DNA of 63,662 bases, filler included, from Octopus bimaculoides (GCF_001194135.2; 8 parts of 8 records of this genome joined end to end with filler, not necessarily neighbours in it); one strand, 5' to 3'; positions 38,132 through 51,865 are shown, counted from the first letter of the whole stretch. Numbers and translations: made by a program. The notes: generated from the sequence alone by a model not told the origin.

Positions 38132-38246
38132 TTAGAACATCGATATGTCACCAATCTCCGGACATGTCTTTGAGAAGAATTCGCTCATCATTTTAAAGAA
38201 TTTCTCAAAGCATGATATACCAATAAGATACGCTCCAGCACCTTCT
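38132..38246 (-). CDS. FYVE-ARM probable terminal exon: R-EGAGAYLIGISCFEKFFKMMSEFFSKTCPEIGDISMF*
   Basis: strong tract ttttttgttttctacag|A GAA GGT; the phase-2 start matches the upstream donor; TAA ends at 38132. Confidence 0.75.
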
Positions 38247-50421: not shown

Positions 50422-51865
50422 AAATATACAGGCATAGACAGACACTTATCTATTTATTTACTTATCTATCCAGCTGTCCATCTCAATCTATTTATCCTTC
50501 CATCCATCTAACAAAAAATGAAAAATAAAAAGTTGGCCCCCACCTTTGGCACCATTGCTGTGTCTCTGGAGAATTCCGCCAATTGTTTCGCAGCAACAAT
50601 CCGGAAGTTCTGGAACAAAAGAAAATGGGGGAATCATCATCATCATCATCATCATCACCATGAGCAATTCCATCATCATCATGAACATTAACAGTAGTAT
50701 TATCATCATCAATAACATTGCAAGCACCACTACTGCTACTACTACTACTACTACCACCACCACTGTTATCACTACCATCCATATCACCAGTCACACCACC
50801 ACCCCTCATACTACAGCCACTACCATTAACACCACCACCACCACTGCCATCACCATCATAATCTCTCATGCACTTAGCACCACAACATCCACATGGTTCC
50901 GGGTTCAGTCCCACTGCGTGGCACCTTGGGCAAGTGTCTTCTGCTATAGCCTCAAGCCGACCAAAGCCTTGTGAGTGGATTTGGTAGATGGAAACTGAAA
51001 GAAGCCCGTCGTATATATGTATATATATGTGGCTGTGTGGTAAGTAGCTTGCTTACCAACCACATGGTCCCGGGTTCAGTCCCACTGCGTGGCACCTTGG
51101 GCAAACACACACGCACACACACAAGCACGCCAACCACTCCCAGAGTGTAGTGGGTGCTTTTTATGTGCCACCGGCATGAGGGCCAGTCAGGCGGTACTGG
51201 CAACGGCCACACTCAAATGGTGTTTTTCACATGCCACCAGCACTGGAGCGAGACCGCTGCTCTGGCAGTGATCCCGCTTGGAATACGACGGATTTCTTTC
51301 AGTTTCCGTCTACCAAATCCACTCACAAGGCTTTGGTCAGCCCGAGGCTATAGTAGAAGACACTTGCCCAAAGTTCCACGCAGTGGGACTGAACCTGGAA
51401 CCACTCCTGCATAGAATGTAAAGAATATTTTGTGCAAAAGAAAAAGAATGCCAAAGATTATTTATGATAAAAACTATGTTTATATGTAAGGGAAATACCT
51501 CGATATACAAGTTAACTTGTTCCCAGAGATTGCTTGTAAAGTGAAAATTCGTAAAGCAGAGCAATAATTTCCCATAGTAGTAATGTTATAAATTGTAATT
51601 CGTTCCCAGAAAAATGTATTGGGAGTTGTTTCATTCAACTAAAACCCTTCAAGGTTGTGCTCCAGCATGGCTGTTGTCTAACAAATGACATAAGCAAACG
51701 AAAAGAATAAAAAGACTCTACCAGGTCCCCCATTATAAAAATTCCATAAGCAGGGTTTGAACTTACGATGCTGGACGACCGTGCCTTGGCCACTAAATCT
51801 GCCACTGGATAACAGGTGGAACATACTTTCTCTTGTTTCTCAAGACCCAGCTGGGGCAAAAAGAT
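38132..51865 (-). CDS. Uncharacterised FYVE-finger + Armadillo-repeat protein gene, 5'-partial; complement(join(51767..51865,50544..50609,50267..50332,[missing exon],48782..48876,47633..47772,46229..46303,45085..45204,43361..43492,39519..39649,38132..38246))
   Basis: Ten stop-free exons (1039 nt), all with an AG acceptor and the nine internal ones with a GT donor. Phases are compatible at every junction except one that spans an N gap. The product has a FYVE C-terminal signature (LPQLGLEKQEKVCSTCY) followed by amphipathic ARM-like repeats (VVEVGGVQALVAL; MKTLCIIA; LVANLA; RGIANFS; TMRAISFLL). Confidence 0.88.
38385..38648 (-). mobile_element. Family-B SINE 3' half, runs into a gap
   Basis: near-consensus ttttacttgtttcagtcatttgactg... 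Confidence 0.9.
39196..39374 (-). mobile_element. SINE family C (head GTGGAGGCGCAATGGCCCAGTGGTTAGGGCAGCGGACTCGCGG)
   Basis: same as the 47143, 56488 and 60782 copies. Confidence 0.85.
39519..39649 (-). CDS. FYVE-ARM exon, 131 bp: MQYLPEIIRKGLMSEHTQIKQQTMRAISFLLAYMPEQTTEHLL-R
   Basis: ggtgatggttgctag|ATG...CTGAG|gtaaga; phase 0/2; the acceptor lacks an adjacent pyrimidine tract (see findings). Confidence 0.82.
39655..40005. repeat. Compound (CAT/CGT/CAC)n microsatellite immediately upstream (minus sense) of the 39649 acceptor
   Basis: direct reading. Confidence 0.95.
40160..40568 (-). mobile_element. Full-length family-B SINE
   Basis: complete head-to-tail match with internal (TA/CA)n. Confidence 0.9.
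41277..41482 (-). mobile_element. Family-B SINE 5' half
   Basis: near-consensus; shares the junction ...cagccactcgacg with the 40160 copy. Confidence 0.85.
43361..43492 (-). CDS. FYVE-ARM exon, 132 bp: VCLSNLQKTLCSLLHRDDLDTETLLNIQRGIANFSKFKLNTPTL
   Basis: cttctgtcttcacag|GTC...ACATTG|gtaagt; phase 0/0. Confidence 0.87.
45085..45204 (-). CDS. FYVE-ARM exon, 120 bp: KDMACGQNINSLLKGSAWQQEVLTMATSLVANLAVCSSDT
   Basis: ttgtcttctttcag|AAA...GACACG|gttcgt (the donor is less certain); ANLA ARM motif. Confidence 0.8.
45352..45530 (-). mobile_element. SINE family A
   Basis: rc of the family-A body and tail. Confidence 0.8.
45530..45665. repeat. G-rich ~16-bp minisatellite (GGGGCTGACAGTTGAG)n, ~8 degenerate units
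   Basis: direct reading. Confidence 0.85.
45870..46140 (-). mobile_element. Diverged family-C-like SINE
   Basis: gaaattaacatgcaagtggctgag...cagcgtgacac...; tRNA-like head at the right end. Confidence 0.7.
46229..46303 (-). CDS. FYVE-ARM exon, 75 bp: MQSAAVKILTFISASNNWCRHQLIQ
   Basis: cctcgttacttccag|ATG...ATCCAG|gtaaca; phase 0/0; ARM-like. Confidence 0.86.
47143..47477 (-). mobile_element. SINE family C
   Basis: near-identical to the 56488 copy. Confidence 0.9.
47633..47772 (-). CDS. FYVE-ARM exon, 140 bp: G-GAVSLVAMKTLCIIAKDKETHSIIVDSQRVQALPQIFLFLNSTEPQ
   Basis: tctctgccatgcag|GG...CCTCAG|gtcagt; phase 1/0; open frame. Confidence 0.83.
47995..48348 (-). mobile_element. SINE family E 3' part (GTGGTTGGCGTTAGGAAGGGCATCCAGCTGTAGAAAC motif, (GAT)n tail)
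   Basis: related pieces at 51128-51290 (-) and 55592-55762 (+). Confidence 0.75.
48782..48876 (-). CDS. FYVE-ARM exon, 95 bp: x-ILEKSSKYGNISADGISAIHIFCKTPGLITK-G
   Basis: ttaccaattcccacag|TATC...AAAAG|gtaagt; phase 2 start; the phase 1 end fits the next exon. Confidence 0.8.
49090..49624 (-). mobile_element. Family-A SINE (49090-49280) adjacent to a family-B SINE (49280-49624)
   Basis: both match the family consensus seen elsewhere in the window. Confidence 0.85.
50267..50332 (-). CDS. FYVE-ARM exon, 66 bp: VVEVGGVQALVALATVDEAEIQ
   Basis: ctcttctattgaaag|GTC...ATCCAG|gtcaga; textbook ARM VxxGGVxxLVxL pattern. Confidence 0.86.
50544..50609 (-). CDS. FYVE-ARM exon, 66 bp: NFRIVAAKQLAEFSRDTAMVPK
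   Basis: cattttcttttgttccag|AAC...CCAAAG|gtgggg (weak donor); phase 0/0; ARM helix-3-like. Confidence 0.78.
50890..51408. mobile_element. SINE cluster: two + family-B heads (50890-51105), an E fragment, and a - family-B 5' half (51292-51408)
   Basis: direct match to the family sequences; forms an inverted pair. Confidence 0.8.
51767..51865 (-). CDS. FYVE-ARM exon, 99 bp: IFLPQLGLEKQEKVCSTCYPVADLVAKARSSSI (FYVE C-terminal half)
   Basis: minus strand tctatttacag|ATC...AGCATC|gtaagt; resembles the Hrs FYVE end IPKFGIEKEVRVCEPCY. Confidence 0.88.

Follow-up and report, generated by a model that had tools for sequence, protein, structure and literature searches.

A gene on the minus strand of a 63,662-nucleotide stretch of Octopus bimaculoides DNA (hereafter, the window) encodes a FYVE zinc finger that continues directly into a solenoid of armadillo (ARM) repeats. 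The full gene is expected to comprise 13 coding exons with a product of approximately 472 amino acids, and the window carries coding exons 3–5 and 7–13. The protein belongs to a family of FYVE–ARM proteins found across opisthokonts and is most likely—with a probability of roughly 0.7—a phosphatidylinositol 3-phosphate (PI3P)-anchored peptide-binding adaptor.

Ten minus-strand exons, labeled A to J in gene order and listed below, each feature a pyrimidine-rich AG acceptor and a GT donor and share a single open frame, which closes with TAA at 38132–38134. The boundaries were obtained by extending open frames and listing AG and GT sites and were then fixed against orthologues. Exons A, B, and C have phase 0–0; D starts with one base and ends with one extra base, to which E gives the other two; F, G, and H are again 0–0; and I leaves two extra bases, the third coming from J. 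The 1086 nucleotides of the ten exons (1083 coding plus the stop codon) contain zero stops and zero frameshifts, all splice sites are intact, and the coding capacity of the window amounts to 77 + 284 = 361 residues. An earlier note on this DNA had predicted ten short exons with proper splice sites and chained phases in one frame; these exist, and all ten peptides that it quoted lie where it had placed them. Its details are corrected as follows: exon E spans 47820–47633 (188 nucleotides), where a short exon from about AMKTLC onward had been read; the end of exon G lies at 45085 (ACG/gttcgt) and not at 45103, which adds VCSSDT; and the window encodes 361 instead of approximately 345 amino acids.

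The Octopus sinensis protein XP_029657313.1 (P0012; 392 amino acids, labeled "partial") starts with the same exon as the window's exon A and is identical to the window protein at 348/361 residues (96%). Searched by tblastn, it matches all ten exons in protein order on the minus strand with 90 to 100% identity and E values of 1e-7 to 1e-36—exon-by-exon matches that are far beyond chance—and the window exons are also matched by P0003, a protein of another cephalopod that is approximately 46% identical. The translation of exons D–J is identical to UniParc UPI0006955B75 (P0001), whose first exon is D, and contains the RefSeq protein XP_014789730.1 (P0013, LOC106883286), which is 229 amino acids long and named "uncharacterized." The gene had been described as hidden, which holds in part: the model LOC106883286 spans only 38132–47749, from an internal Met at 47749 in exon E, and models of O. 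sinensis and Octopus vulgaris hold the exons, whereas O. bimaculoides has no annotation of the FYVE half-exon and of the first ARM exons. In the following list, identities are those to O. sinensis.

51767–51865, minus strand: exon A, third coding exon, 99 nucleotides, phase 0–0, IFLPQLGLEKQEKVCSTCYPVADLVAKARSSSI; C-terminal half of the FYVE domain, with its last β-strands, KVC replacing RVC, the fourth CxxC zinc pair, and the C-terminal helix; splice sites ...tttacag/ATC and ATC/gtaagt; 94% identity, tblastn E value 7e-15.
50544–50609, minus strand: exon B, 66 nucleotides, phase 0–0, NFRIVAAKQLAEFSRDTAMVPK; capping helix between FYVE and ARM repeat 1, equal to helix 115–128 of the P0003 model; splice sites ttccag/AAC and AAG/gtgggg; 100% identity.
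50267–50332, minus strand: exon C, 66 nucleotides, phase 0–0, VVEVGGVQALVALATVDEAEIQ; helices H1 and H2 of ARM repeat 1 with the family-invariant GG and a subthreshold Pfam Arm match; splice sites gaaag/GTC and CAG/gtcaga; 96% identity.
49625–50206, no strand: gap of 582 N with a missing coding exon of approximately 95 nucleotides, EGVMQGLHSLSMHQTLHNTLIQSGAVKAISH in O. sinensis.
48782–48876, minus strand: exon D, 95 nucleotides, the first completing a His codon and one extra at the end, (H)ILEKSSKYGNISADGISAIHIFCKTPGLITK; splice sites cccacag/T and AAG/gtaagt; 97% identity.
47633–47820, minus strand: exon E, 188 nucleotides, VLQDGALLPVLNLCHAGGAVSLVAMKTLCIIAKDKETHSIIVDSQRVQALPQIFLFLNSTEPQ; includes VLQDGALLPVLNLCHAGGAVSLV, whose DGAL..VL.LC block is kept in 34/34 family members; splice sites accacag/TCC and CAG/gtcagt; 95.5% identity, E value 3e-36.
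46229–46303, minus strand: exon F, 75 nucleotides, phase 0–0, MQSAAVKILTFISASNNWCRHQLIQ; splice sites ttccag/ATG and CAG/gtaaca; 96% identity.
45085–45204, minus strand: exon G, 120 nucleotides, phase 0–0, KDMACGQNINSLLKGSAWQQEVLTMATSLVANLAVCSSDT; helix 3 of ARM repeat 5, with the family-invariant Asn of ANLA at codon 45109–45111; splice sites tttcag/AAA and ACG/gttcgt, the donor at 45085 being demanded by P0001, P0013, and P0012.
43361–43492, minus strand: exon H, 132 nucleotides, phase 0–0, VCLSNLQKTLCSLLHRDDLDTETLLNIQRGIANFSKFKLNTPTL; helix 3 of ARM repeat 6, with the invariant R..ANF motif (Asn codon 43394–43396); splice sites tcacag/GTC and TTG/gtaagt; 93% identity.
39519–39649, minus strand: exon I, 131 nucleotides, two extra at the end, MQYLPEIIRKGLMSEHTQIKQQTMRAISFLLAYMPEQTTEHLL(R); splice sites gctag/ATG and GAG/gtaaga; 98% identity.
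38132–38246, minus strand: exon J, last coding exon, 115 nucleotides including TAA, (R)EGAGAYLIGISCFEKFFKMMSEFFSKTCPEIGDISMF*; acceptor ttctacag/A, the phase of which fits exon I; 90 to 95% identity to O. sinensis and O. vulgaris.

The exons lie in a source piece of 14.7 kb (window positions 37730–52471; 41.6% G+C), which is the reverse complement of positions 2555–17296 of the O. bimaculoides contig LGKD02011972.1 (L001; 17,296 nucleotides; assembly GCA_001194135.2) and is interrupted by seven internal runs of N. Exactly one orthologue exon within the span of the window is absent from the sequenced DNA: 31 amino acids, P0012 residues 78–108. Its place must be between exons C and D (50267 to 48876), hence in the N run 49625–50206; its length would be 95 nucleotides, since exon C ends in phase 0 and the first T of exon D completes CA/T for His. 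Neither this exon nor exon 2 has a match in the sequenced parts of the piece or of L001 by tblastn at word size 2 and E values up to 50, and upstream of exon A in the piece (51866–52471) tblastn gives no match to the N-terminus. Coding exon 1 lies outside the window, at L001:189–306 beyond a gap of 1905 N, and reads MADDSIDGMIRLENCNVCPAKVIGPVETYQWPSFVLRKA with the donor AA/gtaagt; it is 90% identical to O. vulgaris CAI9744129.1 and part of none of the O. bimaculoides gene models seen. Exon 2, which is WIPDEEADCCFICRERFNQVRRRHHCRQCGKIVCKTCSKNK in O. vulgaris and the expected carrier of RRRHHCRQCG, is lost in O. bimaculoides in the same 1905-N gap.

That the FYVE and ARM parts share one messenger RNA, as the earlier note had assumed, is borne out in other cephalopods by single open reading frames (ORFs) on transcript-like contigs. 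P0003 is encoded by one unbroken ORF of 1419 nucleotides on contigs of approximately 2 kb from several independent runs (SRR27666064, -080, -083, and -087); its 472 amino acids run from the N-terminal segment through a complete FYVE domain into the ARM region. These contigs are probably transcripts, because the octopus gene spreads its 13 exons over more than 17 kb. The O. vulgaris protein CAI9744129.1 (P0002, "8-like isoform X2") omits exactly the window exons B, C, F, and H, which are all symmetric (phase 0–0; 66, 66, 75, and 132 nucleotides) and the loss of which would remove parts of ARM repeats; the omission stems either from genuine exon skipping or from faulty annotation.

A decaying pseudogene, or a scaffolding chimera in which exons A–D and E–J stem from different genes, would fit the fragmented assembly with its seven internal gaps in 14.7 kb, the two coding exons missing from the sequenced DNA, the RefSeq annotation of the 3′ part only (229 amino acids, start in exon E), and the divergence of Octopus at conserved positions. 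Such an origin is already disfavored and highly improbable: the ten exons are free of stops and frameshifts with intact splice sites, O. sinensis has the same exon set in one model at 96% identity, and the O. vulgaris model links exons 1–2 to exon A and onward to the ARM exons. The gaps spare all ten exons—none is abutted—and on both sides of each gap the exons keep the order and orientation seen in the orthologue. Single ORFs on cDNA-like contigs of other cephalopods cover both parts.

The FYVE domain of the family is, to judge from its sequence, canonical and of the PI3P-binding type. Pfam FYVE (PF01363) scores 66.2 bits on P0003, 63.0 on P0006, and 70.7 on O. vulgaris P0002, at a cut-off of 27.8. 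In a family alignment of 34 sequences, W42, D45, R63, H65, H66, C67, and R68, which form the WxxD and R(R/K)HHCR signatures, are invariant, and the RVC motif (R95, C97) and the four CxxC pairs that supply the eight zinc cysteines are fully or almost fully conserved. A profile search against the sequences of the Protein Data Bank (PDB) retrieves the PI3P-binding FYVE domains of Vps27, LM5-1, ZFYVE16, RUFY1, Lst2, EEA1, and Hrs at E values of 1e-14 to 4e-19. With the O. vulgaris N-terminus placed in front of it, exon A can be aligned position by position with the C-terminal half of the Vps27 FYVE domain (IPLPDLGIYEPVRVCDSCF, residues 46–67) and also to the solved FYVE domains of ZFYVE16 and Lst2, so that the CxxC exon is indeed a FYVE C-terminal half, as had been claimed from the window, with orthologues at 63 to 71 bits. 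The R(R/K)HHCR motif that the earlier note had singled out for a check is present in the orthologues, including O. vulgaris, which carries WIPD, RRRHHCRQCG, and all eight zinc cysteines; the fourth pair (C-S-T-C) is the one in exon A. In front of the FYVE domain, a conserved segment (P0003 residues 8–40; RLEG.DV.PA..EG..DVF..P.F.L.K.RW) has no Pfam match and is predicted to form a β-hairpin, with a predicted local distance difference test (pLDDT) score of 82 to 92.

The rest of the protein is an ARM solenoid, again in keeping with the earlier reading of the exons. Pfam Arm (PF00514; cut-off 20.6) is passed in the orthologues P0003 (25.3 bits), P0006 (22.7), and P0011 (50.0), and gives a subthreshold 12.6 bits on the window's own sequence. 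The AlphaFold2 model of full-length P0003, computed with 34 aligned sequences, has a mean pLDDT of 92.4 and a predicted template modeling score (pTM) of 0.87 and features a β-hairpin at 10–17, the FYVE domain at approximately 40–105, and helices over 98–464, namely a capping helix and approximately eight three-helix repeats up to 464. The C-terminal helix of FYVE continues without a linker into the capping helix, and to judge by the high pTM, the FYVE and ARM parts probably keep a fixed orientation to each other. The 284 window-encoded residues are modeled equally well and as all helical (pLDDT 92.2, pTM 0.88), and Foldseek against the PDB relates this model to designed ARM proteins and importin-α3 with a probability of 1.0 and template modeling (TM) scores of 0.72 to 0.78. 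For the full-length model, Foldseek returns Vac8 (query-normalized TM score 0.60 to 0.62, root-mean-square deviation 3.1 to 4.5 Å over approximately 350 columns), followed by importin-α and β-catenin. The putative groove residues N342 of ANLA and R378, N382, and F383 of R..ANF show full or near-full invariance across the family, and octopus exons G and H keep them.

FYVE domains with WxxD, R(R/K)HHCR, and RVC bind PI3P, and the helix-3 asparagines of importin-α, β-catenin, and Vac8 bind the backbone of extended partner peptides. From the conserved FYVE motifs and the conserved helix-3 residues, taken with this background, we infer PI3P binding, peptide binding, and a cellular role as a PI3P-anchored, groove-presenting adaptor. 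The FYVE domain would dock the protein on PI3P-rich membranes—endosomes, phagosomes, or autophagic membranes—and the rigidly attached ARM superhelix would hold an extended peptide of a partner protein in its concave helix-3 groove, centered on the invariant Asn and Arg of ARM repeats 5 and 6 (ANLA, R..ANF). The outcome would be recruitment or tethering of the partner to PI3P membranes. This would parallel lipid-anchored Vac8 on the yeast vacuole and the Giardia protein GlFYVE, which links clathrin to endocytic compartments.

Several points weigh against this proposal. Taken by itself, the spliced window peptide stays below every Pfam threshold and gives no match to FYVE, of which it holds just the C-terminal third; the domain identity is taken from the orthologues for this reason, and an RVT_2 match on this peptide is dismissed as spurious. 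The exon with WxxD and RRRHHCRQCG falls within the 1905-N gap of L001, so the PI3P site of O. bimaculoides is deduced from O. vulgaris. The window reads EKVCSTC, with Lys for the Arg of RVC. The substitution, a conservative one, is shared with O. sinensis and O. vulgaris, whereas ERVC is the usual form in the family and one bivalve has EKIC. A monomeric, single FYVE domain is often weak on membranes without dimerization or a second contact, and a coiled coil is absent from the protein; a lone FYVE without a dimerization module may need a second membrane contact. Finally, Octopus differs from the family consensus at 13/49 highly conserved ARM columns, and the function of its protein may have drifted. 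In the octopus lineage, RHRIIQEDF, near-invariant elsewhere, is replaced by RHQLIQKDM (exons F–G region, P0001), and the block NAACL.ANLATS..DQ carries N to M, C to S, T to V, and Q to T; in comparison with the other cephalopod sequences P0003 and P0004, this suggests relaxed or shifted constraint in octopods.

Members of the family share one build: a short, conserved N-terminal β-hairpin segment, one canonical FYVE domain, a capping helix without linker, and approximately eight ARM repeats; those of animals are approximately 470 amino acids long. Within the orthologous group, members align over their full length in the same order with 30 to 96% identity (cephalopod and coral members with 40 to 45%) and share the FYVE motifs, ANLA(T), and RG[IL]ANF, the latter two of which read LVANLA and RGIANFSKF in the window. 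The window exons map to positions 83–472 of the family alignment, save the exon lost in the gap, and the family hidden Markov model scores P0001 with 261 bits and P0012 with 402 bits. The spread was taken from named matches of word-indexed searches and from cluster look-ups of an exhaustive HMMER search, which yields 67 representatives at E<1e-30. The members are as follows.

Mollusks and bryozoan: cephalopods, gastropods, bivalves; Watersipora.
Chelicerates: Trichonephila, Nephila, Tachypleus.
Deuterostomes: crinoids, an ophiuroid, a holothurian; the hemichordate Glandiceps; the tunicate Styela clava.
Anthozoan cnidarians and placozoan: Porites, Acropora, Actinostola, Nematostella; Trichoplax.
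Nonanimal members: the choanoflagellates Diaphanoeca and Savillea; Capsaspora; Ichthyophonus; Fonticula; the glomeromycetes Diversispora and Glomus.
Example proteins: those of Haliotis rufescens and Anneissia japonica, Styela XP_039274084, Trichoplax RDD42612.1, Capsaspora CAOG_05090, Fonticula H696_05142.

BLAST with the ARM part only ties the nonanimal members to the animal core at E values of 1e-12 to 1e-28, and these members retain the motifs ANLA and RG.AN[FL]; those of holozoan protists are approximately 900 to 990 amino acids long, with long disordered extensions. A broader 19-sequence profile added just Acropora and P0217 (a Logan protein) and did not widen the named distribution. FYVE+ARM proteins of Thecamonas and Physarum align with the profile in the same order but are not counted as members, since their ARM parts best match generic ARM proteins and the architecture alone is shared. 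The family had been proposed as kept in lophotrochozoans, which is too narrow: it is pan-opisthokont and includes echinoderms, a hemichordate, the tunicate Styela, and chelicerate arthropods. Its proposed absence from standard models stands up, in that no vertebrate, insect, nematode, or ascomycete/basidiomycete (yeast) protein is among the named matches of these searches; together with the known human FYVE catalogue, this points to absence from vertebrates, insects, nematodes, and yeast but is not proof of it.

Among known systems, yeast Vac8 (PDB 5xjg, 6kbm, 6kbn, and 7ycj) resembles the proposed FYVE–ARM adaptor as a membrane-anchored ARM superhelix with a groove for partner peptides. It comprises 12 ARM repeats and owes its membrane anchorage to myristoyl and palmitoyl groups at the N-terminus, where the presumed anchor here is FYVE. 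One alternative, which takes the Vac8-like role suggested in the earlier note as orthology, is that the protein is the animal or holozoan counterpart of fungal Vac8, with FYVE replacing the acylated N-terminus, and that it serves in selective autophagy, organelle inheritance, or vacuole or lysosome contact sites. Among natural solved proteins, none matches better than Vac8, either by sequence (48.9 bits, E value 3.6e-12) or by TM score, both proteins are ARM solenoids with a known or presumed membrane anchor, and the pipelines of NCBI call the Haliotis and O. vulgaris orthologues "vacuolar protein 8-like." However, consensus-designed ARM proteins outscore Vac8, so that the match may reflect generic ARM similarity. 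The identity is just 19%, approximately eight repeats stand against 12, and a Met-Gly plus Cys acylation motif is lacking—the exon 1 N-terminus reads MADDSIDGMIRLEN, and family N-termini are not conserved as MG..C—and for these reasons the protein is not regarded as a Vac8 orthologue. Moreover, glomeromycete fungi have FYVE–ARM proteins of their own and fungi in general also have Vac8, which would argue for separate families. Orthology to Vac8 is rather unlikely.

The ARM part could also be a substrate receptor or regulatory module of the type of ARMC5 or plant ARIA (ARM-BTB ubiquitin-ligase adaptors), with FYVE serving for protein contact or for a different lipid instead of for PI3P-dependent recruitment of a cargo adaptor. 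Pfam ARM_ARMC5 (PF24768) is the best nongeneric ARM model on the orthologues (38 to 48 bits), a sea cucumber orthologue is named "ARM REPEAT PROTEIN INTERACTING WITH ABF2," and the ARM-BTB proteins Rubus P0219 and P0167 are among the weaker matches. Yet the profile likeness over ARM repeats 1–4 (38 to 48 bits) is weak, the scores (20 to 48 bits in all) lie far under the cut-off of 79.9, and none of the members has the BTB domain that belongs to ARMC5 and ARIA; score and missing BTB set the FYVE–ARM protein apart from the ARMC5 type. The invariance of all FYVE PI3P-binding signatures in 34 members would be hard to explain without lipid binding, and we consider this assignment improbable. The favored reading stays that of a PI3P-anchored adaptor.

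The PI3P-binding effectors Vps27/Hrs, EEA1, ZFYVE16/endofin, RUFY1, and Lst2/ZFYVE28 have a homologous FYVE domain (E values of 1e-11 to 1e-19) with the same motifs and eight zinc cysteines but combine it with VHS/UIM, coiled-coil, RUN, or other modules, and none with a directly fused ARM solenoid. The FYVE-then-ARM layout, which the earlier note had set apart from the human FYVE proteins, is nevertheless not unprecedented: Giardia lamblia GlFYVE (GL50803_16653), the only characterized protein found with it, carries FYVE followed by ARM repeats on endocytic compartments, where its ARM part mediates association with clathrin heavy chain and a dynamin-related protein (PMC7058353). GlFYVE differs by its length of 990 amino acids with a long disordered N-terminus, and it is likened to the FYVE–ARM family by its described architecture (PMC7058353). 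P0167 (990 amino acids), considered as a candidate for GlFYVE, was rejected as an ARM-rich protein without FYVE domain.

Beyond the adaptor function, the family may be an ancient group of PI3P effectors that dates back at least to the opisthokont ancestor, was lost independently in vertebrates, insects, nematodes, and dikaryan yeasts, and acts as a PI3P-anchored functional counterpart of Vac8, with a conserved partner in the invariant Asn/Arg groove of ARM repeats 5–6 on endolysosomal or autophagic membranes. This wider proposal is tentative and, taken as a whole, somewhat doubtful; if true, the independent losses would be the reason why the family was never studied.

Annotation of the family is generally poor. 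Its database names are "uncharacterized" or misleading, such as "vacuolar protein 8-like" (Haliotis rufescens), "ZFYVE26-like" (Anneissia japonica), "ZFYVE21" (Trichoplax RDD42612.1), "putative PIKfyve," and "ARM repeat protein interacting with ABF2." A literature search found no paper in the searched library that treats the family; together with the names, this agrees with the earlier description of the protein as uncharacterized. In the cuttlefish Acanthosepion pharaonis, the orthologue is split into two models on one contig (P0056, P0059), a 243-amino acid FYVE part and an ARM part fused into an 812-amino acid product, and the blood clam Tegillarca granosa has two near-identical adjacent models, KUTeg_003561 and KUTeg_003563 (P0009, P0010).

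In the rest of the 14.7-kb piece, no further genes were seen on either strand, leftover ORFs being of low complexity or repeat-derived, and scans for tRNAs (ARAGORN) and Rfam families gave zero calls. A repeat resembling short interspersed nuclear elements (SINE-like), approximately 130 to 200 nucleotides long, occurs in at least eight copies of both orientations with 78 to 97% identity. It contains a tRNA-like B-box (GGTTCAGTCCC) that is called by neither ARAGORN nor Rfam, and the assembly probably breaks at these repeats, since several copies run straight into gaps. Imperfect trinucleotide arrays yield long stop-free ORFs of Ile, Asp, Thr, His, and Val in several frames, up to 180 amino acids, and are intronic low-complexity DNA, not genes.

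40385–40572, 41286–41486, 49496–49624, 50886–51039, 51262–51403, and 52285–52471, also 38395–38648 and 40167–40440, both orientations: copies of the SINE-like repeat.
39640–39950, 43600–43888, 50620–50860, and 52147–52264: imperfect trinucleotide arrays of the ATC/GAT and CCA/CAC types.

FYVE proteins are the main PI3P readers in endosome, phagosome, and autophagy biology, and to our knowledge their catalogue rests almost entirely on work in human, fly, worm, and yeast. The octopus locus belongs to a well-conserved family of putative PI3P readers of which no member was found from these lineages—a conserved "dark" family that is built from well-understood modules and whose function is predicted only. 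The novelty lies in recognizing and delimiting the family, not in the gene; the sequences are already public as predicted proteins. For annotation, the gain is a corrected 13-exon octopus gene structure and the recognition that the current orthologue names "Vac8-like," "ZFYVE26-like," "ZFYVE21," "PIKfyve," and "ARIA" are misleading. Tractable species that have retained the family, among them Nematostella, Capsaspora, and ascidians, allow it to be studied, and its compact, apparently rigid FYVE–ARM build suggests a distinct way to present a peptide-binding groove at a PI3P membrane.

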